This document shows, one piece after another, positions 7,151 to 63,483 of a DNA stretch of 64,000 bases. The stretch spans positions 212,979-276,978 of the IMG/VR virus record IMGVR_UViG_3300042923_000281, one strand, 5' to 3'. The first letter of the stretch is position 1. Each line of letters opens with the position of its first letter. A program made the translations under genes and the position numbers. The notes under the pieces are model-generated. The model made no database searches and had not been told where the DNA came from. It worked only from the letters and a program-made list of their open reading frames with translations.

Positions 7151-7747
7151 TTACAACAATGCGATTTCATCACGCTGCTTTTGCAGCTCTTCACCAAAGC
7201 ACGTCAGGTACATTTCAGGATAGCGTGCATAACCGCTCATCCCAAACTTCTCCTTTAGATGCTTGACCGATTCTTCATACCGCTGATCTTCCGACTGTTC
7301 CGGATGATGCGCCACGCGATACAGAATGGCTCGTTCCAGCATATCCGAGACATTCCCCGGCATCATTCGATCAGCTGCGTTAATCAGCTCACAGAACTGA
7401 CTGTGGAACGATCCTTTGAACGATGCCCGATGCTGATGACACCCCCATGCGACCATCTTTGTTTCCAATGGATCAAGGTTATCAAGGATCACCGGATGAT
7501 CCGTGCTCATCATCCAATGAAAACTCAATTCATGATGATTCACCCGACTCCACGCAAACATATCGTGAAAGTACGCTGCAAACAGAATCAGCTTTGGATC
7601 ATACCCAAAGTCCATTCGGTTACTGATTGCAGTACCACATTGAAACACCGCTTCAAAGTGATTCTCTCGATGCGCTTTATCATTCAGCTCCCACACATGT
7701 GAGAATCCCTTAATGATCTCTTGACGCCATTCGGGAATATTCTTCAC
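7151..7747 (-). CDS. HD-domain metal-dependent phosphohydrolase
   Basis: HRENH...AAYFHD...HHELS...HQHRAS...AADR motifs; AAGGAG RBS, GTG start. Confidence 0.85.
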   Translation of the reverse strand: MKNIPEWRQEIIKGFSHVWELNDKAHRENHFEAVFQCGTAISNRMDFGYDPKLILFAAYFHDMFAWSRVNHHELSFHWMMSTDHPVILDNLDPLETKMVAWGCHQHRASFKGSFHSQFCELINAADRMMPGNVSDMLERAILYRVAHHPEQSEDQRYEESVKHLKEKFGMSGYARYPEMYLTCFGEELQKQRDEIALL

Positions 7748-7780
7748 TGCTCACTCCTTGGTGATGGTTATCTCACTCTT

Positions 7781-7807
7781 ACAATGTAGTGCTACAGATT
7801 CTTGGAA
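7781..7807 (-). promoter_or_regulatory. Putative phage early promoter
   Basis: TTCCAA-N13-TACATTGT upstream of the HD gene. Confidence 0.65.
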
Positions 7808-7809
7808 TC

Positions 7810-7848
7810 AAAAAAGAAAGGGAGGGCCGAAGCCCTCTCCTTTTATTC
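7810..7848 (-). terminator. Intrinsic terminator
   Basis: GAGAGGGC-TTCG-GCCCTCCC followed by TTTCTTTTTT on the minus strand. Confidence 0.85.
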
Positions 7849-8223
7849 GTAAGCGAACCGGATGTAGATCTGGAGTTGCTCCGTCAGGTACTTGACCTTG
7901 GCGGTGGAGAACAGCAATTGGTCCAGAGCACCGTACATGTACGACGGGTCTTCAGGACTGATCTGGTGACGGTCTTGCCAGTAGCGCTGCAAGTGTTCCA
8001 GCTTCAGTTTCGTGGTCGGGTAGGAAGGCATCTCAGGCTTCCAGCCTTCCTGTTCGATCAAGTGATGAGCAGCCTGAACGCCACCGAACAATGCGTAACG
8101 GCACTGGTCAATGATCTCAGGATCGACGGAGACCTTGTTGGCAGTGAGGACAGCTTCCAGCTCTGCCAAGGCAGTGACGTGCAAATGCCAGTGGACCTGA
8201 CGTGCACCGATTGAATTGTTCAT
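7843..8223 (-). CDS. Hypothetical protein (126 aa)
   Basis: GAGG RBS; tightly packed operon. Confidence 0.75.
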   Translation of the reverse strand: MNNSIGARQVHWHLHVTALAELEAVLTANKVSVDPEIIDQCRYALFGGVQAAHHLIEQEGWKPEMPSYPTTKLKLEHLQRYWQDRHQISPEDPSYMYGALDQLLFSTAKVKYLTEQLQIYIRFAYE

Positions 8224-29990: not shown

Positions 29991-31904
29991 TTAGAAGCTA
30001 TTGCCGAAGCCAAAGCCGTTACCAACGCTACCACGCAGCGAACGTGCGCCATCACCAGTCACGCGGCGGCTCGAGAGCATGCCGTGAGTGAGGTCACCAC
30101 CGACGAAGTCACGGATGCGAGTGTTACCACGCAGGCGACGGTTGCCGAAGGTGTAGTGAGCCGAACGCTGGTCGATGTTGATTTTGCAATCAGCAACGGC
30201 CATGGCCAGCGCTTCGATGAACTGCGGGTTGACGAACGCCAGGTCTACGTAACGAGCGAACTTGACGTTGCTCGCACCGAGAGCGCTGGTCAGTTGGTCG
30301 TACTGCTCGCTGACGCGGATTTCAACGTCCAGGTCAACGCGGTCGATCACGTCCTGATAACGCAGGGCAGACTCGCCTTCGTCATTCGGGTTGGTGGCCA
30401 TCCAGCGCAGCAGGTCCCATTCACGCAGATCGCGCTCGTTGCCCTTCTCGTCGATCCAGGTGCCAGTCAGGTAACGAGCACCGGACATTTGCAGCGGGGT
30501 TTCGACGCCCAGTTCACGGGCACGGCGGGTGAAGTTGCCGTTGGTCAGACGGTCGGCGTAGTCGTACAGACGGCCGATGGCGTCCTTGTTGGCGCTGTCG
30601 TCAGTTGCAGCGTCGGACAGCAGGGAGGTGATCCAGCTGTTGTCGCCGCCTTCTTCGAGCTCGATAGCCCAGGCCAGGTTGTCGTCAACCAGGCTGAAGA
30701 AGTACTGAGCCCACTTGTGGGTGTCCAGCGACGCACGGTTGTCGAACTCGACCGGAGTCTTGTCCTGATCCGGGCCGAGGATGTTCAGCAGACCAGCGTC
30801 ACGGTGGTCGATCTCACCACGAGCAACATCGCCCGGCAGGTAAGTCTGAGCCCACGCTTGGTCTTTGGAGATGACCGACGCACCAGCCAGAGCCAGCAAC
30901 AGCAGCTCAGGGGTGATGCCGTTGGCGTTGGTGTCCATGCGGTTGATCACGTACATCGGAGTGAAGTACGGCTGATCACGGCGCTGGGTACGGGACCAAC
31001 GATCTTGTTCGACCGGCGGGGTGTACATGATGCTGACGTAACCGCCCAGGTTGGCCAGGCCAACAGGGATGTTCTGGTCGCCTTTGCGCACGATGCCGGC
31101 AACGGTAACGGCCAGGTCGGAACGACGCGGCAGACCGTCGGCGGTCATGACTTCACGGCCAGACAGGTCGACGTTGATTTCCAGAGTCGACTGCTTGCTC
31201 AGCCAGTCCAGCGAGAAGAACAGGTCAGGCTGGAACAGGTTGCTGTAGATCGCTGCCAGAGCGGCCTGGGCGTAGAACACGACCTGACGCACTTCGGTGT
31301 TTTCCGGATCGTTGAAGTCAACCTTGTGGCTCACTACACGCCAGCCGGCACGCACGATTTCAACGCTACGGCGCTGGCCTTCGAACGCCTTCTTCGCGAT
31401 TTCGTCAACCAGAGCCAGGTAGCTCTCGGTGATGTAGTCGGAAGCGATGATCGGCAGCGGGTAGGTGCGGTGGTTGATCTCGACGTTACGCACGGTGGCG
31501 TCGTCGGTCATGCTCGAGGACAGAGCCAGGGCGGAAACCAGAACCTTGACGGTGCCGTTGTCTTCGACCGGGTATGCCAGGATCACAGAGCTGATGCTCA
31601 CGTTGTGCTCGGAAGCTTCCAGACCCAGAACTTGGATCTTGGAGAGGTCGATCAGGCCGGCGCCTGCAACCTGACGCTCTGGATCGAACCAGTGCTTAAC
31701 CGACTTAACAGCGTTGACCAGAACTTCGCCGCTGATGCGACGGGACATCGGTGCGCCGAGCAGGCGGTTGATGTCCAGCAGACCGGCGGTGGTCGCTTGG
31801 GATTCACGAGCCGGGCGCTCAGCACGCTGCTCTTGGCGCGGAGCTTCGCGGGAGGTACGCTCGTTGCTCGAAGCGGAGTTGTCGATGTCGTCTTGTACAG
31901 CCAT
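29991..31904 (-). CDS. chmA: Phage nuclear shell protein chimallin (phiKZ gp54-like)
   Basis: 637 aa, immediately upstream of beta'-N; G.P.RSD..V and G.W.D..G..RDLR..D patterns; aromatic/Gly C-terminal tail; strong AAGGAG RBS; own promoter and terminator. Confidence 0.88.
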   Translation of the reverse strand: MAVQDDIDNSASSNERTSREAPRQEQRAERPARESQATTAGLLDINRLLGAPMSRRISGEVLVNAVKSVKHWFDPERQVAGAGLIDLSKIQVLGLEASEHNVSISSVILAYPVEDNGTVKVLVSALALSSSMTDDATVRNVEINHRTYPLPIIASDYITESYLALVDEIAKKAFEGQRRSVEIVRAGWRVVSHKVDFNDPENTEVRQVVFYAQAALAAIYSNLFQPDLFFSLDWLSKQSTLEINVDLSGREVMTADGLPRRSDLAVTVAGIVRKGDQNIPVGLANLGGYVSIMYTPPVEQDRWSRTQRRDQPYFTPMYVINRMDTNANGITPELLLLALAGASVISKDQAWAQTYLPGDVARGEIDHRDAGLLNILGPDQDKTPVEFDNRASLDTHKWAQYFFSLVDDNLAWAIELEEGGDNSWITSLLSDAATDDSANKDAIGRLYDYADRLTNGNFTRRARELGVETPLQMSGARYLTGTWIDEKGNERDLREWDLLRWMATNPNDEGESALRYQDVIDRVDLDVEIRVSEQYDQLTSALGASNVKFARYVDLAFVNPQFIEALAMAVADCKINIDQRSAHYTFGNRRLRGNTRIRDFVGGDLTHGMLSSRRVTGDGARSLRGSVGNGFGFGNSF

Positions 31905-54775: not shown

Positions 54776-56452
54776 TCAGTTGCTTTGCTCGACGGCCAAG
54801 CCAGTTACGCCCAGTTGAAGCTGAGCGTTTGCGGTTTCCCGAATCCATCGAATGTAGATGGTCTCGCCGACTTTGACGTCGTTGAGGATCGGGAACTCTT
54901 GATTCCACTGGGTCACAGCGAACGGGTACTCACGCGTCTTCGTCTGAATCACGAAGTGCGTAGGTTCGAGTGCTTGGATCTCACTGGTATCGTCGAACAA
55001 ATGGTTGAGTGGGTAGTAAACCTTGTTGAGCCAGCCGTCCAGATCTGTAGCCCCCGCTTTCAGATCCAAGTACGACAGGTTGACGTTGACGAAGCGGTTC
55101 TTGGCAATGACGCCAGCGCCGAAGAACTTCTCTTGCGACGGATCGCACTTGACCTGCCACTTGTCGCCTTTCTCCGAACCGGGCTTCATCAAAGCAAACT
55201 CGGCAGATTGGACGAACTTGTGTTCAGGGAAGATCGGGTCAACGTTACTGAGCAGTACGCCGAACTTCAGGCGCTGACGGGACACGTAGTCCTTGCCATC
55301 GAACGCCACTTCGTTGTCTGGGGTCTCGACAACCGAACGCGGTACACGGTAGTACTGGTCGCGATCGACATTGAAGAGCCAGAAATCCAGATCATACCGC
55401 GACGCTGGATCGTTCCAGGTCGGGAATGCGTACAGACGCACACTATAAGCATTGTCTGCCGCGATTGCTTTGATCGTGAACGGCTCGGTAATGAAGCCAT
55501 TCTCGGTAATCCCGTGTTCCAGGGAGAACTCTTGATCGGACAATTTGTACGACAGGGTCAGCTTGTGAGCGTAGGTCTGGATCGTCGGGGAATACCACCG
55601 CAGCCCGTGCAACGACATCTTGCCAGTGCCATCGAGTACCACTGGGATCTCGAGTTCTTCACCCGTGTTGTACCGCACCACGCCGGTCATGACCACAGTC
55701 TTGAGGTCGACGTTGATAGGTACCACGAGTTGGCTCGAGTCCGCTTCGGACAGGTACGGGCTTTTCAGACCGATGGAACGGATCTGTTTACGACCCGCTG
55801 CCGTACGACGCACCAGCGTAGTGTTTTCCACCAGCATGGTCGAATGGCTCAGGGCGTTACCCACGGCGTTGTACAGCACAACCGTGACCACTTCACCGTT
55901 GGACAGCTTACGGTTCGTGTTGCCCGCCTTAGGCGCCCAGATAGCCCAGTTGTTCAGCTCATCGTGGCCCACATGTTCCAACCCGATGTTCTCGTTCTCG
56001 TACTCGCCCGAAGGAGAATAAGAAGCCGAGATCAAGATACCGTTGTCGGTCTTGTCCGTGCCGAGGAAGACCTTGTAGTGGTCAGCGTCCGAACGGTACA
56101 GGTGGAGACGCCCGTCGATCTGCATCGAGTAAGGCATCTGACGGGTGTCGATGTACACGCGCCATGTTTCCGATTGCGAACCGGTACCGACGCCCAGCAA
56201 CTGGTCGACGATCACGTTGTTCTCGGTGGTGATTGGCAACTTCCACGGAATGAAGGTGCATTTGCCGGTGGAGATGTCGATCGTGGTCACCAGATACCAG
56301 CCTGAGGTCAGGTCAAGGATCAAGTCATCCACGTTGGGGCAGTACAGACCAGTGCCTGGCTTGCCCGTGAAGATCTGACGCATGAACCAGATTCGGGGTT
56401 CTCGTGTCAGATCGACAATACCTACCTGAGGAATGTCTTCAACAGTACTCAT
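54776..56452 (-). CDS. Virion structural protein, probable baseplate (phiKZ gp26-like)
   Basis: 558 aa, beta-rich; synteny with the terminase. Confidence 0.75.
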   Translation of the reverse strand: MSTVEDIPQVGIVDLTREPRIWFMRQIFTGKPGTGLYCPNVDDLILDLTSGWYLVTTIDISTGKCTFIPWKLPITTENNVIVDQLLGVGTGSQSETWRVYIDTRQMPYSMQIDGRLHLYRSDADHYKVFLGTDKTDNGILISASYSPSGEYENENIGLEHVGHDELNNWAIWAPKAGNTNRKLSNGEVVTVVLYNAVGNALSHSTMLVENTTLVRRTAAGRKQIRSIGLKSPYLSEADSSQLVVPINVDLKTVVMTGVVRYNTGEELEIPVVLDGTGKMSLHGLRWYSPTIQTYAHKLTLSYKLSDQEFSLEHGITENGFITEPFTIKAIAADNAYSVRLYAFPTWNDPASRYDLDFWLFNVDRDQYYRVPRSVVETPDNEVAFDGKDYVSRQRLKFGVLLSNVDPIFPEHKFVQSAEFALMKPGSEKGDKWQVKCDPSQEKFFGAGVIAKNRFVNVNLSYLDLKAGATDLDGWLNKVYYPLNHLFDDTSEIQALEPTHFVIQTKTREYPFAVTQWNQEFPILNDVKVGETIYIRWIRETANAQLQLGVTGLAVEQSN

Positions 56453-56490: not shown

Positions 56491-59061
56491 TTAATCGATT
56501 GGCAGGTGGTCAATGACGATAGAACGGGTGATGTCGATCTTGTCGTTCAGCATCACCTTGATCGCCCGAGCCAGGAAGTTGTACTGGTAGATCGGGAGAG
56601 CGAAGGTCGTGTTGCGCTCATGGGCCTCAATGGCCACGTAACGCTCATCGAACCCTTTGGTGGTCGGCTCGTACTTGAGCAACCACTCGTACCCTTTACA
56701 CCACGTCCGCACATCCACGTCACTGTAGTACTCAGTCAGCGGGATCTGGTCAAAGTACCCACTGATCAAGTCGTGCATCAACTTGCCCACGAAGGGACTG
56801 TACACGGAATGACGGAAGGGGATCAGGTTGACCTCTTGTGGAGGGACCTCACCCGCACGGATGGTCATGTAGTCTTCGATCTGCTGATCAGTGGCTTCCG
56901 CCACCTTACGCATGTCGTACGCATCCTGATACGTCACTCCCCGCAAAGGGATCAACGGCTCAGTGACCTGATACGGAGCACCGTTGCGCACATTCTTCAG
57001 AGTGACTTCTGGACGGTCTTCTGCCCAGCTCAACTCATCACGGCTCCAGATGCGACCATCGGCAATGACACGAATGACCTTGTCATCGCGCAGGTTCCAA
57101 CGGTTGTTACGGCTGAGCAGACCATTCTCCACAAACCCGTACTCCGACTCTTTGACCCGCGACATGTCGGGGTTGCAGAAGCCAGTGTGACGGATGGTGA
57201 TGATGTTCTTCGTGCCAACCTGATTACGGTACTGACGGTTGATGATCATGATCTCTTTATCGACCATGAACCAATCCAGCTTCTCGACCAAAGGATGGCC
57301 GTTCAACCAGATCTCCAGCAACCCGGCCGGGATCTCAACCAAACCCGTGTAGAGCACGCCGTCAATGCGGATCTCTTTCACGTTCAAGCTGAACCGCAAC
57401 AGACCGTCTGCGTAATCCAACTCAAGGCTGTAGGTCAGGAACGAATCATCGAACTTCACCGCGGTGTAGAACTGCTGCGGGTTGACCTTCCACACCACTT
57501 CCCCATTGATGAGGTCGTAATGCGTGGTCTTGTCGGTGACGTCGATCCAATCGCCGGTAGGTAGTGCATTGTCAATCGGGCACACGTAGCAACGGTAGGT
57601 CAGCCCCGCTTTTACCTTGGCGTTCTTTCCGTAGACCGTGGTCAGTACGTCAGTCCCTCGGCCCACGATGCCTTCAATGTAACGGCACGCTTCAGCACGA
57701 GGCACGTAGTTCTGCACGTTCTGGTTCAAGTACCAGCCCAACAGACGACCGGAGCCGTCGTATTCGTAGACCGTGCTTTCACCCCGCAGACCAAATGGCA
57801 ATTCAGTCCAGGCCTTTGGTGAGGTGATCTTCTGCGGCGTGTCCGCCACGATACGGGTGATGGTGTTGTAGCCGTAAGCTTCTTCCACCATCTCACGAGT
57901 GATCGTTCCCGAACGACTGCGCATCAAAGCAGGATACTGAGACTTCTCCAGCTCCTCGATACGCCACACGTCCACCACGGCCTCAGTGCCGATGACCGCA
58001 CCCAGCCATTCACTGTCTTTGAGCTTGTACAGCTCTCGGATGTGATGGGCTTCACTCATCAGTTCGCGATCTAGCCCCGAACGACGAATGAACATCTGCA
58101 CGGTAATCTGGTTGTTGACTGCCCAGTTGGGGTTCTGGTTCAAGAAGCGGTCCACTTGAGCCGTCGGGATCGAATAGTCGCGATGGGTGACCATGCGCAA
58201 CGAATCCTCGGTGTTCTTGTGGTAGTACACGCCCTTGTGAATGTACGGGGTCTTCTTGTACATCAAGAAGATGTCCTGGTCATCGCGGTACCAGATCAGG
58301 TCGTCGTTGTTGGTCTTTGGATGAAGCAAGTACTTCTGCTTCTGATCCAGTTCCGACAAGAAGACCGGCAGGTCCTTGACTTCGAACTCTTCCACCCGTA
58401 CCACCGAGCTGTCCCGCACGATCTCAACGAGATCCCCAACCTTCAGGGTGCTCACGTTGAGTTCATTGACCCGCCAGCCATTGACAAAGGCAAAGCAGTA
58501 GCCGGTCTTCAAACGCATGTCCCGCAGCTTGAACGTCAGGGCGTTGATCTGCGAACTGCTCAGCGGTTTGCCGTAGTGGTACTCAATGCCTTCATACGGA
58601 TCGTTCATGTCGTCCCGATCAAAGAAAGCATTGCTGTAGAACCGCACGTAGATGTTCTCGTAACCGAAGTCACCGATCACCAACAGGTTCTCTACCGCGA
58701 TCACAAGGTTGCCATCGTCGGTATAAAGGAAGTAAGCCAGACGACGAGGAATCATCAGGCCACGTTCACTGTAGATGTCGATCAGCAAGACGGAATCCAC
58801 CATCTGGCTGCTCACGGCTGTCCACGTGTTTCGTTTCAGGTCAAGGTCCAGATTGCTCAGGGCGATGTTACCAAATTGGAACACATGGTAGCGTTCTTTT
58901 GCAGTCGGGAGATTGAAGCGCGTCCATAGCACCTCAATACTTCCCCGAGCCCCGACTTTAGGGCTGATGCGTGCAGGACGAAGGATGTGCTGCCGGTCCT
59001 GCTCCGGCGCACACCACACGTTCTTGTACGCATGGTTGATCAGAAAATCATCGGAGGTCAT
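56491..59061 (-). CDS. Virion structural protein (phiKZ gp27-like)
   Basis: NVWCAPEQDRQ, RMVTHRDYS, YGYN motifs; synteny. Confidence 0.8.
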   Translation of the reverse strand: MTSDDFLINHAYKNVWCAPEQDRQHILRPARISPKVGARGSIEVLWTRFNLPTAKERYHVFQFGNIALSNLDLDLKRNTWTAVSSQMVDSVLLIDIYSERGLMIPRRLAYFLYTDDGNLVIAVENLLVIGDFGYENIYVRFYSNAFFDRDDMNDPYEGIEYHYGKPLSSSQINALTFKLRDMRLKTGYCFAFVNGWRVNELNVSTLKVGDLVEIVRDSSVVRVEEFEVKDLPVFLSELDQKQKYLLHPKTNNDDLIWYRDDQDIFLMYKKTPYIHKGVYYHKNTEDSLRMVTHRDYSIPTAQVDRFLNQNPNWAVNNQITVQMFIRRSGLDRELMSEAHHIRELYKLKDSEWLGAVIGTEAVVDVWRIEELEKSQYPALMRSRSGTITREMVEEAYGYNTITRIVADTPQKITSPKAWTELPFGLRGESTVYEYDGSGRLLGWYLNQNVQNYVPRAEACRYIEGIVGRGTDVLTTVYGKNAKVKAGLTYRCYVCPIDNALPTGDWIDVTDKTTHYDLINGEVVWKVNPQQFYTAVKFDDSFLTYSLELDYADGLLRFSLNVKEIRIDGVLYTGLVEIPAGLLEIWLNGHPLVEKLDWFMVDKEIMIINRQYRNQVGTKNIITIRHTGFCNPDMSRVKESEYGFVENGLLSRNNRWNLRDDKVIRVIADGRIWSRDELSWAEDRPEVTLKNVRNGAPYQVTEPLIPLRGVTYQDAYDMRKVAEATDQQIEDYMTIRAGEVPPQEVNLIPFRHSVYSPFVGKLMHDLISGYFDQIPLTEYYSDVDVRTWCKGYEWLLKYEPTTKGFDERYVAIEAHERNTTFALPIYQYNFLARAIKVMLNDKIDITRSIVIDHLPID

Positions 59062-59082
59062 GACACTCGCCCTTTTGAGTAA

Positions 59083-60393
59083 TCAGTCATTACCTGCGAT
59101 GATCTCATCCAGGTACTTGCTGAAGGTGGTCTTCATTGGCGTTTCGCCAGCCGGGCTGACTTCGTACAGGTTGCCCCGGGAGTCAGCAGCAATGAACACC
59201 GAGTCCACGCCCACGCTTTCGATCACGTACAGGCCTTTGGTCTTGAAGTACTTGCTGATTTCTTTCGTCCCAGCAACCACGTCGAGGTGACCGGCTTTAT
59301 CGCCGAGACCGTAGATCTCGTGACTGCCGATGGCCAGTACGCCGAACTTCTTGAGGAAGGCCACGTAGTCCGGTGCGAACTTCACACCCAGCTCTTTCTG
59401 AGCCAGATCGATCTCGCCTTGCAGTGGTGGCTTGCCGCCTTCGAAGGATTCGGTGGAGACGGTCAGTTGACGCATCTTGCCAGCCAGGGTTTCCATCGAC
59501 TTGACGAACGAACTCATGCCGGCTTCGTTCAAGCCTAGCTTCTGCACGAGCAAGCCCAGGCTGTTACGACGCCACACTTTGGTGTTCGCCGCAGCTTCAA
59601 CCAACGACAGGAAGACCGGTGGATATTCCAGAGCCACGCCACACAGTTCTTCAGCGCCCCAGCCGAACCACGAACGGTTCAGACCCATGACGATAAAGCC
59701 TGCGTTCACCTGCACGATGCGGGTGTTCGAGGAGAAGTGTGCACGCAGAACCGAAACGTAATCTTCCAGCAACGCCATGTAGTTGGAGCTTTCCACTACA
59801 CTCTGGATGATCTGGATCGGATGACGCGTCCAGCGCTGAATCAACTTCATTGCGGTAGCTTTACCATGTGCCGACAGTACTTCGTCTGCACCATAAAACT
59901 GATGGATGTAAAAAAGTCCCGTAATGATCTGAATCTCGCGCGCTGCCACTTCGTCGACGCCGAGCTTGCTTGTGATGAGGCCGGCTACCCAAGAGATGTA
60001 CACTTGAGGAGCCAAATCACCCACTCGCAGGAAATCATCTCGGACTGAGAGGTCTTTAACCCACAGCGCAGTCAGCTCACCCACGCGGACGATAAAGTCT
60101 GCTTGGGTTTGGTTTGTGATAACGAAGCCCGAGGGCGAACGCTTTTCTTCACGCATGAACGACCGGCCGTCACTGAACACGACGCCGTTCTCGTTCAACT
60201 TGCGGCTGCCGTATTCTTCCGATGTGATCGGGAGTTTAAAGGCAGGGATCTTTGCAGCAGCAGGTGTAGCCAAAACTACAGCGGTACCGTCAGCGACCAA
60301 TTGACCCATGGCTTTTGCCACGGCCAGTTCGCTGATAATTTCGCCAGTTTTGTGTTGACGAAGCGCGGTGGAGTTCCAGGGGCTGGTGATCAT
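59083..60393 (-). CDS. Conserved virion protein (phiKZ gp28-like) fused to a C-terminal SMI1/KNR4 (SUKH) domain
   Basis: N-domain with W.G...VALEYPP.F; after VSTES comes EI..AQKELGVKFAPDYVAFLKKFG...EIYG...YVIE...TFSKYL; GAGG RBS, ATG 60393. Confidence 0.82.
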   Translation of the reverse strand: MITSPWNSTALRQHKTGEIISELAVAKAMGQLVADGTAVVLATPAAAKIPAFKLPITSEEYGSRKLNENGVVFSDGRSFMREEKRSPSGFVITNQTQADFIVRVGELTALWVKDLSVRDDFLRVGDLAPQVYISWVAGLITSKLGVDEVAAREIQIITGLFYIHQFYGADEVLSAHGKATAMKLIQRWTRHPIQIIQSVVESSNYMALLEDYVSVLRAHFSSNTRIVQVNAGFIVMGLNRSWFGWGAEELCGVALEYPPVFLSLVEAAANTKVWRRNSLGLLVQKLGLNEAGMSSFVKSMETLAGKMRQLTVSTESFEGGKPPLQGEIDLAQKELGVKFAPDYVAFLKKFGVLAIGSHEIYGLGDKAGHLDVVAGTKEISKYFKTKGLYVIESVGVDSVFIAADSRGNLYEVSPAGETPMKTTFSKYLDEIIAGND

Positions 60394-60559
60394 CTTCGAC
60401 CTCTTCTGTCGCAACCAGTAAAAAATAACAAAATAGTATGTGGTGATGGTATCGAATACATCGAGTACCGAATCCTACGGTTTTTAAATGTAGGCAAGGG
60501 CCATACCATTCGTAACTTCACGCGCGAAGTTGATATTCTTTCCCATGGGAGACATGAAC

Positions 60560-62617
60560 ATGTCGTCTGTTTCGATGGCTTCGTCTTTGCCGAGAACGGA
60601 AGTTCTTGGTTTTAAAGATGTGAGCGGTCAGGGTCAACCGCTGGAGATCGTCAACCTGCCGATCTTCCTGCCCTGGACCCCGCTGTTCACATCCTGGGGT
60701 CCCTCCGACACCGCCATGCTGGTGAGTGGGGGTGGCTTCAGCACTATTTACGGTGCGGACAACTTCTACCCTGGTTCGGCATTCCTGAGCCACCAAGGCG
60801 CCATGTTGCAGAAAGTCATGCAGACTGGTGCAATGGCCTTGGTCCGTCGACTGAAGGCAATCGGTGCAGCAACCGCCAACCTGCGTATCTGGGTTGACAT
60901 GGTCGATGACAAAATCGATCAGTACGAGCGTAACCCAGACGGTACCTTCAAACGTACCAATGGCGCGCTGGTTGTTATCGGTGAGCCTGTGCTTGGCTAC
61001 CGCCTGCGTTTCGTGGTCGAGAAGATCGACGGCGAAGACGGCGTGAAGAAAGCCTCGCCAACCACCGGCACCATGACCAACTGGGACGGCAAACCGTCTA
61101 CCCAGTACCCGCTGATGGATCTGGAAGCCCGTTTCGACGGCGCCAAGGGTTCCAACTTCGGTCTGCGTCTGGTCGCTCCAACCACCAACAGCTCGACTCC
61201 GGTCAACGCTGAACTGGTTGAAGGCCAAGGTGCGTACGTGTACCGCCTGTCGATCCTGGAACGCGCTGGTGTGAATAGCACCGGTCAAGTCCTGATGAAC
61301 CTCGACGGCAACCCGTTCGTTGAGTTCACGCTGAAGCAAGGTGTGGTCGATCCAAAGTCCAACCTGAACTACAGCTACGACAAGCGCATCCTCAAGGCGT
61401 TCGAAAATAACGACCCTGAAGTGTTCTCCGGTTATGGCCCGCTGAAGACGTTCCACGTTTACAGCGCTCACCTGAAAACCGTGCTCGACGCGATCTACGC
61501 CACCGAGAAAGACTTCGGTCTGATCGAAAGCGAGATCACCCCAGAGCAGTCGATCAACCTGTTCGGCGGTACCAACGTCAATGGCGTTCCGTACTACTCC
61601 GTCAAGATCGAAGGTCCTTCTGCCGGCGGCGTGCTGTTCGGCGAGACCGCGACTCACTGGCTGCAAGGCGGTGAAGACGGTGAAGTGACTCCTGAGTCTT
61701 ACGACGAAGCAGTCCAAGGCGAACTGAACGTGTTCGGTGAAGGCGATGTGCCTTACGCTGACCGTGCAAGCTTCCCGATGTCCAGCTTCATCGACACCGG
61801 CTTCACCTTGCCGACCAAGCGTCTGATGTCCAACGTCATGGCGATTCGTCCTGATGCGTGGGTATTGGCGTCGACCCAAGACGTGCTGGAGCCGTTGAAC
61901 ACTCCGGAAGAAGATTCGAGCATCGGCGCTACCCTGCGTAACGCGCTGAGCTTGGTTCCTGAATCCGAGTTCTACAACACCGGCGCCTGCCGTGCTATCG
62001 TCATGAAGCACGCTGGTACCTACCTCGATTCCGACTACGACGGCATCCTGCCGTTCACCGTCGACTTCGCGGTCAAGGTCGCTACCTACATGGGTGGCGA
62101 GCGCATGAAAGCGGGCTACGCGCCTGACAACTCGGCTGGTCGTATTGTGTCTCGCTTCGTCGACCACAACGCCAAGTTCCGTCCGGTCAAGCCGCGCAAC
62201 ACCGACTGGCAAGCTGGTATCTCCTCGGCTGAGCCCTTCGACCACCGTGGTCAAGTGTTCTTCCCGGGTATCCAGACCGTCTACCACGACAACACGTCGG
62301 TCCTCAACTCGTTCTTCCCGATGGCCATCTGCTGCCACCTCAACCGTATCGGTGAGTTGGCCTGGCGCATGTTCACTGGCGACAGCCGCATGACTGCTGC
62401 TGAATACGCCACGAACGTCGATCGGTTCATCGAAGAGCAGATCAAGGATCGTTACGACGGTCGTGCGGACATCACCCCGAGTTCCTACTACACTGCGGCT
62501 GACACTCAGCGCGGTTACAGCTGGCACACGGACATCGAAGGTCTTTTCGACGGCATGAAGACGGTGGAAGTATTGACCGTTGTTGCTGGCCGTCGTCCTG
62601 GTACGGAGACTGAGTAA
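60560..62617 (+). CDS. Tail sheath protein (phiKZ gp29-like)
   Basis: About 685 aa; GFKD.S, LQGG.DG, DTGF.L.TK, PESE.YNT.ACRA, RGYSW; precedes the tube; GGGAG RBS. Confidence 0.9.
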   Translation: MSSVSMASSLPRTEVLGFKDVSGQGQPLEIVNLPIFLPWTPLFTSWGPSDTAMLVSGGGFSTIYGADNFYPGSAFLSHQGAMLQKVMQTGAMALVRRLKAIGAATANLRIWVDMVDDKIDQYERNPDGTFKRTNGALVVIGEPVLGYRLRFVVEKIDGEDGVKKASPTTGTMTNWDGKPSTQYPLMDLEARFDGAKGSNFGLRLVAPTTNSSTPVNAELVEGQGAYVYRLSILERAGVNSTGQVLMNLDGNPFVEFTLKQGVVDPKSNLNYSYDKRILKAFENNDPEVFSGYGPLKTFHVYSAHLKTVLDAIYATEKDFGLIESEITPEQSINLFGGTNVNGVPYYSVKIEGPSAGGVLFGETATHWLQGGEDGEVTPESYDEAVQGELNVFGEGDVPYADRASFPMSSFIDTGFTLPTKRLMSNVMAIRPDAWVLASTQDVLEPLNTPEEDSSIGATLRNALSLVPESEFYNTGACRAIVMKHAGTYLDSDYDGILPFTVDFAVKVATYMGGERMKAGYAPDNSAGRIVSRFVDHNAKFRPVKPRNTDWQAGISSAEPFDHRGQVFFPGIQTVYHDNTSVLNSFFPMAICCHLNRIGELAWRMFTGDSRMTAAEYATNVDRFIEEQIKDRYDGRADITPSSYYTAADTQRGYSWHTDIEGLFDGMKTVEVLTVVAGRRPGTETE

Positions 62618-63483
62618 TGACCGTCCGTCATCGCGACACCCTGCTCGGTAACGGCTTGGGCTACGGCGAGTACAACAACTCGCCGATGGTCAACCTGGCG
62701 ATTGGTGGGCAGAACGCCTACCAGTCTGACCTCCGTTACTTCCACGCCAACACCGACTACGTGCGCCGCAACCTGATCATCAAGGTTCTGCAAGCGCCAC
62801 GTGGTTTCCAATACCTGGACAACCCAGACGCTTACTACAAAGCCCTCAAAGGCATTGTAGAGATGCACGCACAGACGTGGGACGGCTTCAACCGTACCCT
62901 GACTGTGAACAGCGTCGAAGCTCCGGTGTCCGGTGCTGGCGAAATGCAACAGACTCCAAGCAACGTGACGCGTCAGCGTTCCGATCCTTCGATGACCATC
63001 CGTGAGAAATACGGCCGTCCAGTTCAGCGCTTCTTCGAGAGCTGGATCACCGAGCTGATCATGGACCCGGACTCGAAGGTGCCTGGCATCTCCACCCGTG
63101 TCAACAAGCCTACCGACTTGCTGCCGGACATCTACTCGATGAGCATCATTGCTTTCGAGCCAGACCCGTCCTTCACCAAGGTTAACTCGGCCTGGCTGAT
63201 GACCAACATGTACCCAACCACTGCCGGTGATTTCACTGGCCGCCGTGACAAGACGGCTGATGGTGAAGAGTTGGTGCTGTCGATCCCTTGGACCGGCATG
63301 CAGCAAGTGGGTCTGGCCGTCGACCGTTTCGCTCAGCAACTGCTGGATGCGATGCCGAAGACCGGTACCTCTCCAAACCTGAAGCCGTCGTTCGCGACGG
63401 GCGTGGAAGCAGACGTTGCCAAACACAACGTAGGTTTCACCGAGCAGGTAGCGGACTTCAACCGCACTTACATCAAGCTGTAA
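62617..63483 (+). CDS. Tail tube protein (phiKZ gp30-like)
   Basis: 288 aa, TAATG-coupled to the sheath; YVRRN, EKYG, MDP..K.P, AWL.TNM.P patterns. Confidence 0.85.
   Translation: MTVRHRDTLLGNGLGYGEYNNSPMVNLAIGGQNAYQSDLRYFHANTDYVRRNLIIKVLQAPRGFQYLDNPDAYYKALKGIVEMHAQTWDGFNRTLTVNSVEAPVSGAGEMQQTPSNVTRQRSDPSMTIREKYGRPVQRFFESWITELIMDPDSKVPGISTRVNKPTDLLPDIYSMSIIAFEPDPSFTKVNSAWLMTNMYPTTAGDFTGRRDKTADGEELVLSIPWTGMQQVGLAVDRFAQQLLDAMPKTGTSPNLKPSFATGVEADVAKHNVGFTEQVADFNRTYIKL

Follow-up and report, generated by a model that had tools for sequence, protein, structure and literature searches.

What is an immunity-type domain doing at the end of a structural protein of a phage head? The question is raised by a gene found in a 64,000-nucleotide stretch (the window, from here on) of the IMG/VR virus record IMGVR_UViG_3300042923_000281. 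The window spans positions 212,979 to 276,978 of a complete genome of 276,978 bp with terminal repeats. At 59083-60393 of the window, on the minus strand, a homologue of gp28, the vertex-binding protein of phage phiKZ, is continued at its C-terminus by a SUKH (SMI1/KNR4) domain. The domain is fused to this essential inner-capsid protein, probably so as to be packed and injected with the DNA. According to the reading favoured here, to which a probability of about 0.5 is assigned, gp28 has been extended by a linker with a protease site and by a SUKH cargo, which would be freed in the head, injected, and would neutralise a toxin-type effector.

The open frame comprises 436 codons, from an ATG at 60393 to a stop at 59083-59085. 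This ATG, not the upstream TTG at 60414, was taken as the start, because all homologues begin with the residues MITSPW. The closest cultured relative is Pseudomonas phage pPa_SNUABM_DT01 (DT01 below), the vertex-binding domain being 63% identical to the 311-amino acid gp28 homologue of this phage. The gene and its parts are as follows.

59083-60393, minus strand: gp28-SUKH fusion gene, 436 amino acids plus stop (open frame, translation, Pfam, shared MITSPW start)
59485-60393, minus strand: PhiKZ_VTX (gp28 vertex-binding) domain, residues 1-303 (PF25614, Foldseek match to 8y6v_D, DT01 homologue)
59437-59484, minus strand: inter-domain linker, residues 304-319, predicted to be disordered (AlphaFold2 confidence, low pairwise identity)
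59446-59460, minus strand: putative prohead-protease site, V312-S-T-E315 / S316 (fixed S313 and E315, published specificity, motif enrichment)
59086-59436, minus strand: SUKH (SMI1/KNR4, SUKH_5) domain, residues 320-436 (Pfam and fold matches, 384 relatives)

Residues 1-303 match the Pfam profile PF25614 (PhiKZ_VTX, "vertex-binding protein gp28") with an E value of 6.6e-66 and 223 bits, over a cut-off of 27, positions 1-300 of the 303 in the profile being covered. Both SUKH profiles matched in the region 59083-59445 score over their cut-off of 27, PF14567 (SUKH_5, residues 320-401) with 42.6 and PF14568 (SUKH_6) with 29.4 bits. In the same fusion protein the Pfam SMI1_KNR4 profile stays under its cut-off (21.6 vs. 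25.4 bits), and no MuF (SPP1 gp7) head-incorporation domain was matched. An AlphaFold2 model built on 22 homologues (predicted local distance difference test score, pLDDT, of 84) has two confident folded domains, the SUKH domain scoring about 77-94. The sole stretch below 50, residues 308-320, contains V312-S-T-E315-S316. In Foldseek searches the N-terminal domain matches chain D of the phiKZ capsid structure 8y6v (E 5.5e-12, template modelling (TM) score of 0.83 by target, 331 aligned columns). The C-terminal domain matches the SUKH structures 2icg, 2prv (Bacillus subtilis YobK), 3d5p, 2pag and yeast Knr4 (8aj2), all with a probability of at least 0.98, the four bacterial structures having TM scores by target of 0.62-0.65. 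Profiles, model and fold search concur on a layout made up by a VTX domain, a disordered linker and a SUKH domain. An earlier note on the window, made from its letters, had described a core virion gene of this very composition, fused through an S-T-E site. Both domains are as it had proposed, and the S-T-E-S tetrapeptide (residues 313-316) sits exactly at the position that it gave, 59446-59457. The word core is apt as well, phiKZ orf28 being one of only three minor-capsid genes found essential by transposon sequencing (bioRxiv 10.1101/2025.11.23.690004).

The fusion is absent from GenBank phages. Megablast with the gene as query gave no match among them, and tblastn matched 172 records, the C-terminal third being covered in 0 of the 172. 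Nothing else favours the view that the fusion is an artefact, either a chimeric assembly, as the earlier note had allowed for, or two genes wrongly called as one by read-through. Three further, independent runs (X3, X5, X8), none of them flagged as a possible source of the window DNA, gave contigs that cross the domain junction and differ there by substitutions, never by indels. Of their 20 variant sites 19 are synonymous in the fusion frame, including all four in the SUKH part. The same architecture recurs in at least 17 protein clusters, 42-92% identical (JGI, NCBI, ENA and Logan data), two divergent members (L020, L021) residing in the same synteny. The GC content at third codon positions (GC3) is 0.735 in the SUKH segment and 0.734 in the neighbouring gp27 gene, so the domain is not a recent import. 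The artefact view is refuted by these data, and its probability is practically nil.

Near-identical phage sequence (63-100% of the 31-mers of window positions 58900-60600) is present in at least 14 public runs, which include soil, food and dust metagenomes and several organism-labelled samples. The phage is therefore widespread in the environment.

The linker is the variable part of the protein. Among cargo-bearing proteins the mean pairwise identity is 51% in the linker, 70.7% in the VTX and 68.6% in the SUKH domain. Yet S313 and E315 are invariant in every homologue with cargo, preceded by V, I or A and followed by S, A, G or T. The head protease of phiKZ has been assigned the specificity S/A/G-x-E, refined to L-S-x-E (PMC10449902), and mapped cleavage sites are SLE-13 in gp93 and SQE-122 in gp86 (PMC5694885). 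The protease of SPN3US cuts at A-x-E and favours V at P4 and S at P1' (PMC10052503). The V-S-T-E/S site fits the S/A/G-x-E and LSxE rules of phiKZ, as well as the P4 and P1' preferences of SPN3US. A gp175-type prohead protease is encoded at positions 7361-7945 of the genome (E 1.5e-28 with phiKZ gp175 as query). A search of the genome for the T4-type Peptidase_S77 gave no match, the enzyme being detected only with the phiKZ query.

The motif [VIA]-S-[MLNTFQ]-E-[SAGT] occurs 17 times in the genome, against 4.9 ± 2.2 in shuffled proteins (maximum 11 in 300 shuffles), a 3.5-fold excess. Its P2 residue set was picked after the alignment and a first motif listing had been seen, and one of the 17 counts (ASLEA, L012) falls in a spurious plus-strand reading frame that overlaps the protease gene and encodes no real protein. 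A broader motif is only mildly enriched (26 observed vs. 16.5 ± 4.1 shuffled). Twelve of the 17 sites are N-terminal, in the virion RNA polymerase beta subunit, two phiKZ_IP proteins, a large virion protein and phrog_2767. Taken together, a fixed motif in a variable disordered linker, its enrichment in packaged proteins, the gp175 homologue and the inner-surface position of gp28 support the earlier note in taking S-T-E for a prohead-protease site. In both phiKZ (320 amino acids) and DT01 (311), gp28 stops where the linker of the window protein starts. Release of the SUKH domain by the protease, and its packaging inside the head, are well supported by comparative evidence and by precedent. The fragment predicted to be released (S316-D436) has 121 amino acids, a mass of 13.0 kDa and an isoelectric point of 5.15, in a full-length protein of 47.6 kDa; as predicted, the free fragment is not a basic DNA-packing protein.

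Outside the window, at G000:C1:67084-71040 on the minus strand (L005; G000 denotes the window genome), a virion protein of 1318 residues has N-terminal VSMES, VSFES and ASLES motifs at residues 167, 212 and 311. PHROG 3004 spans its residues 18-963 only, and the C-terminal stretch of about 350 residues could be a further cargo region.

A released domain may also be a discarded one. The SUKH part could act only during prohead assembly, as a chaperone or spacer, and then be cut and cleared or degraded in the manner of scaffolding propeptides. The proteases of the phiKZ group do remove propeptides that leave the head (PMC10052503, PMC5694885), and the SUKH segment has internal S-F-E, S-H-E and A-G-E motifs. 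These internal motifs lie, however, inside a confidently folded domain, whereas the propeptides of the group are typically of low complexity with multiple sites. Moreover, the domain, 13 kDa in size and with a pLDDT of 84-94, is as strongly conserved as the structural domain, and its bacterial relatives are immunity-type proteins. A disposable pro-domain is improbable on these grounds.

The size and composition of gp28 homologues vary among related phages. In a large protein database, VTX plus SUKH proteins form 11 clusters (436-440 amino acids, 55-92% identity), and six longer proteins (569-604 amino acids) have a third module after the SUKH domain. P0026 is made up by VTX and third module only, with no SUKH domain between them, and about 25 proteins of some 311 residues by VTX alone. 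S-x-E recurs at every further module boundary, as VSLES, VSQEA or SNQEA after the SUKH domain and ISMED in P0026; the second S-x-E separates SUKH and third module in P0009, P0030, P0031 and P0033. As relatives swap the SUKH domain for, or add to it, a DUF6985-like module behind a further S-x-E, gp28 appears to be a carrier for exchangeable cargo. The third module (P0026, residues 322-454) has a confidently predicted fold (pLDDT 92), a beta-sheet with a long helix, found no credible match in a fold search of the PDB, and groups with DUF6985/DUF2262 clusters of uncharacterised bacterial proteins. In the window genome a DUF6985 search gave no match.

In a maximum-likelihood tree of VTX domains, the window protein falls in a clade of 11 with 100/98 support, all of them with SUKH. 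Cargo-bearing forms reside in at least three lineages, and their presence and absence needs at least four changes; P0012, which has SUKH only, is the sister of P0026, which has the third module only. The backbone of this tree is unresolved, so the cargo may also have had a single origin followed by losses. Judging from these sequences, the fusion is not peculiar to the window; it marks a whole clade and belongs to a modular set of cargoes (SUKH, DUF6985-like).

The SUKH module is also found in another carrier. P0044 (L015:6001-7746, on the compost metagenome contig RCUJ01000006.1), a different head protein of a related phage, contains a SUKH module 63% identical to that of the window, set exactly between ASME/S and TSME/A. 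Its gene lies just upstream of a 295-amino acid gene, a gp91-like gene and two phiKZ_IP genes. The orthologue in the window genome (G000:C1:191113-192531, minus strand, outside the window) is devoid of SUKH, and has PSMEA/VAMEA at the insertion spot. Presence of the module in one orthologue and absence from the other point to cassette movement between carriers.

These distributions bear on the view that the SUKH part, cleaved or tethered, stays in the head and binds a capsid, vertex-complex or inner-body protein, stabilising the vertex or organising the inner body, and has no host target. SUKH domains are versatile protein-protein interaction modules (PMC3482391), and the make-up of the vertex complex can change; in Goslar, the place of gp28 is taken by an additional domain of gp65, and the gp28 homologue was not seen in the map. 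Searches of the genome for LHH, AHH and HNH found no toxin partner. The phiKZ gp184/Tad1 homologue was not detected in the window genome at E ≤ 0.1, a weak negative, and the SUKH domain might substitute for a missing component. Against this view, SUKH is missing from the nearest relatives that share the capsid gene set (DT01, and more than 20 VTX-only proteins), and is therefore not structurally required. The same module resides in a different carrier in a related phage and is swapped for the unrelated DUF6985-like module, and all boundaries between modules strictly keep the protease motif. A purely structural accessory is accordingly regarded as unlikely, less so than a discarded pro-domain.

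The window phage may be without gp184/Tad1, the one known injected anti-defence cargo of phiKZ.

Several observations concern possible cargoes in other proteins. P0062/P0217 (L017:8001-9275; 424 amino acids, on contigs of 297-303 kb) have a C-terminal SUKH_5 domain behind a YATES/AITES linker; the N-terminal part of P0062 was not gp28-like by hidden Markov model search or hhalign. C-terminal or tandem SUKH_5 domains are also found in the large-phage proteins P0052 and P0195 (572 amino acids, DUF7211 plus two SUKH, on a 217-kb contig; 471 amino acids, two SUKH). The N-terminal parts of all these proteins are not gp28-like, and possibly they represent independent recruitments of SUKH as virion cargo. 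The metagenomic gp28 homologues P0038 and P0039 have a tail of 22-32 residues only, still with VSKE or VSFE, in one case followed by an acidic run. These tails may be remnants of a lost cargo cassette.

What the cargo does is the least secure part of the reading, and can be approached through its relatives. A word-indexed protein search with the SUKH part alone gave no match, while an exhaustive search of a library of representatives found 384 relatives at E ≤ 0.001, mostly stand-alone proteins of about 130 amino acids, 31-43% identical. Multidomain relatives combine SUKH_5 with an LHH nuclease, SUKH_5 with PoNi, Tli4_C with SUKH_5 and DUF6985, or DUF6985 with SUKH_5. Polyimmunity-type architectures of this sort have been described for polymorphic toxin systems, in which SUKH proteins neutralise 18 nuclease families and other toxins (PMC3482391). 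DUF6985 travels with SUKH both in bacteria and in these phages, which suggests that both are immunity-type binders. The SUKH domain of the fusion is under purifying selection equal to that of the structural domain, as indicated by the identities and the synonymous strain variants reported above. Its target is presumably a toxin-type nuclease or another effector. In a wider and tentative reading, held to be somewhat less probable than the one favoured for gp28, the head proteins of chimalliviruses would carry exchangeable, protease-bounded immunity-domain cassettes (SUKH, DUF6985-like) as an injected "polyimmunity" kit, able to disarm effectors with toxin domains, whether from host defence or from neighbouring bacteria, ahead of any phage gene expression.

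The DUF6985-like module of P0026 and of P0009/P0030/P0031/P0033 may be an uncharacterised immunity family, co-occurring with SUKH_5 and Tli4_C in bacteria.

The canonical role of SUKH proteins is immunity to a cognate toxin of the same genome, and phages do package toxins fused to MuF (PMC3482391). By this token the domain could neutralise a toxin or nuclease packaged or expressed by the phage itself, protecting phage DNA in the head or the producing cell. The complete genome has a single SUKH domain, with no adjoining toxin, and no LHH, AHH or HNH match, a limited test as many toxin families lie outside these three. The neighbours of the gene are virion genes, in line with the statement of the earlier note that no cognate toxin is adjacent. 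With no toxin beside the gene and no match to the three families in the genome, a target in the host or in a competitor is likelier than self-immunity, which is given very little weight, less than any other rival save the artefact.

How the domain would reach such a target can be set out in steps. By homology, the gp28 domain would assemble on the inner face of the non-portal vertices, placing SUKH inside the prohead, in up to about 55 copies per head if the stoichiometry of phiKZ holds. In phiKZ, gp28 lies on the inner capsid surface in the vertex-binding complex (PMC11297242); a segment added to its C-terminus is therefore expected to lie within the prohead, where the protease can reach it. 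Being essential in phiKZ, gp28 is a dependable carrier. A gp175-type head protease would then cut after E315, as the comparative evidence strongly suggests, leaving a free, mildly acidic 13-kDa SUKH domain in the capsid lumen. By analogy with gp184/Tad1 and gp93 of phiKZ and with the T4 internal proteins, the free domain would exit the head with the DNA at the next infection. Given the role of its family, it would bind and neutralise a toxin-type effector within minutes of the start of infection, when phage genes are not yet expressed; the likeliest target would be a nuclease domain belonging to a host defence system or to a weapon used between bacteria.

The best precedent is gp184/Tad1 of phiKZ, a member of the vertex complex and an injected anti-defence protein, the C-terminus of which has been reported to be liberated by the head protease (PMC10449902). 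As it belongs to the same sub-assembly, release and injection have a direct precedent, one that the earlier note does not mention. Part of gp184 is held in the inner complex of the capsid, the C-terminal part reportedly being freed by gp175 and injected at the next infection, and its ASLES pentapeptide, near the N-terminus, recurs in packaged proteins of the window phage. The two systems differ in that the phiKZ carrier, gp184, is dispensable, whereas gp28 is essential, and in the cargo, a cyclic-nucleotide sponge (Thoeris/CBASS) in the one and a SUKH protein binder, unrelated in sequence, in the other. Injection has been reported for Tad1; function and injection of the SUKH domain are predictions. 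A second and more distant precedent are the T4 proteins Ip1-3 (IPI*), which are injected nuclease inhibitors (PMC12373910). These small proteins enter the prohead, are cut by the head protease and accompany the DNA into the cell, where each blocks one particular host nuclease (GmrSD variants). As a group they are hypervariable among related phages, which recalls the turnover of cargo on gp28. In contrast to the C-terminal fusion to a structural protein found here, they are stand-alone genes with a short N-terminal capsid-targeting leader, and their folds are unrelated to SUKH. MuF-fused polymorphic toxins and polyvalent proteins likewise join a conserved head-incorporated domain to C-terminal effector modules that vary and for which packaging and delivery are predicted, but the carrier is the portal-associated MuF instead of gp28, and the cargoes are toxins or enzymes instead of an immunity-type binder. 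Bacterial Imm-SUKH proteins such as B. subtilis YobK belong to the same superfamily by profile and fold, and the nearest relatives of the window domain are the stand-alone proteins of about 130 residues and the polyimmunity fusions with PoNi, Tli4_C and DUF6985. The window domain stands apart because fused to a virion protein of a lytic jumbo phage, because only 31-43% identical to cellular relatives, and because its cognate toxin gene was found neither beside the gene nor in the genome (LHH, AHH and HNH searched).

A number of points weigh against release, injection and an anti-toxin role. The lumen-facing position of the gp28 C-terminus is presumed, and for the window phage cleavage, retention and injection are all deduced from sequence and analogy. 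Mapped cleavages in SPN3US nearly all remove N-terminal propeptides (PMC10052503), and release of a folded C-terminal domain would thus be atypical. S-x-E tripeptides are common, 11 [SAG]-x-E being present in the fusion protein alone. Counted among them is the S-M-E of K-S-M-E-T in the last VTX helix (residues 298-300, window 59494-59502), conserved in nearly all family members, cargo-less ones included, and absent from phiKZ gp28; possibly it is a second cleavage site. Injected chimallivirus DNA is reported to be shielded from nucleases by the early phage infection (EPI) vesicle (2026 review). A nuclease inhibitor would then be less needed; by the same token, the target may be something other than a DNase that attacks phage DNA. 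SUKH domains bind proteins of many kinds, and since the three toxin families searched left the domain with no partner in the genome or beside the gene, the immunity function is assigned by family only. Family membership alone suggests an anti-toxin or anti-nuclease function by analogy with bacterial relatives. The proposal of the earlier note that the domain is released in maturation and delivered with the genome is partly supported. Packaging and release by the protease have good support, analogy makes injection plausible, and the toxin-neutralising role follows the family; protection of the genome before the nucleus forms would be a further step in the same line.

The design of an injected cargo released by the head protease is already known; new here are essential gp28 as the carrier, an immunity-type cargo (SUKH, DUF6985-like) and cassette exchange between carriers. 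Phages receive no more than a brief mention in the founding SUKH paper, where replication nucleases are concerned. A literature search found no paper on SUKH in virions of tailed phages, the matches being mostly author names, and the term DUF6985 in no paper. According to a 2026 review, no anti-defence protein other than Tad1 has yet been described in jumbo phages. If released and injected, the SUKH domain would be a second, mechanistically different injected counter-defence cargo, and would link the immunity proteins of polymorphic toxins to phage counter-defence. If the polyimmunity kit holds true, it would be the first recruitment of such domains as injected phage counter-defence. Uncultured jumbo phages could be screened for packaged effectors by a simple sequence rule, an S-x-E-bounded module on a head protein. 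The cargo slot that this essential carrier naturally offers at its C-terminus is a candidate place to load foreign proteins into capsids of the phiKZ type, and the SUKH domain could be used as bait for a host effector acting in the first minutes of infection.

The surroundings of the fusion gene in the window include the following features.

56491-59061, minus strand: gp27-like virion protein (DUF7193), directly downstream, with a 21-nt spacer (PF23823, E 6e-296; synteny in DT01, phiKZ, L020 and L021)
54776-56452, minus strand: gp26-like virion structural protein (phrog_3430, E 6e-156)
60530-62617, plus strand: tail sheath, phiKZ gp29-like, divergently transcribed (PF20961 and phrog_3242)
62617-63483, plus strand: tail tube protein, phiKZ gp30-like (PF23806, E 9e-117)
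30063-31859 (G000:243041-244837), minus strand: homologue of chimallin, phiKZ gp54 (E 4.7e-20, 24% identity)

Tail tube and tail sheath are followed by the divergent gp28-SUKH, gp27-like and gp26-like genes. This order (gp30-gp29 / gp28-gp27-gp26) is kept in the window, phiKZ, DT01, L020 and L021. Genes for a virion RNA polymerase subunit and for phiKZ_IP internal head proteins are present in the genome as well. Chimallin, the polymerase subunit, the phiKZ_IP proteins and the gp175-type protease together identify a nucleus-forming, phiKZ-like phage.

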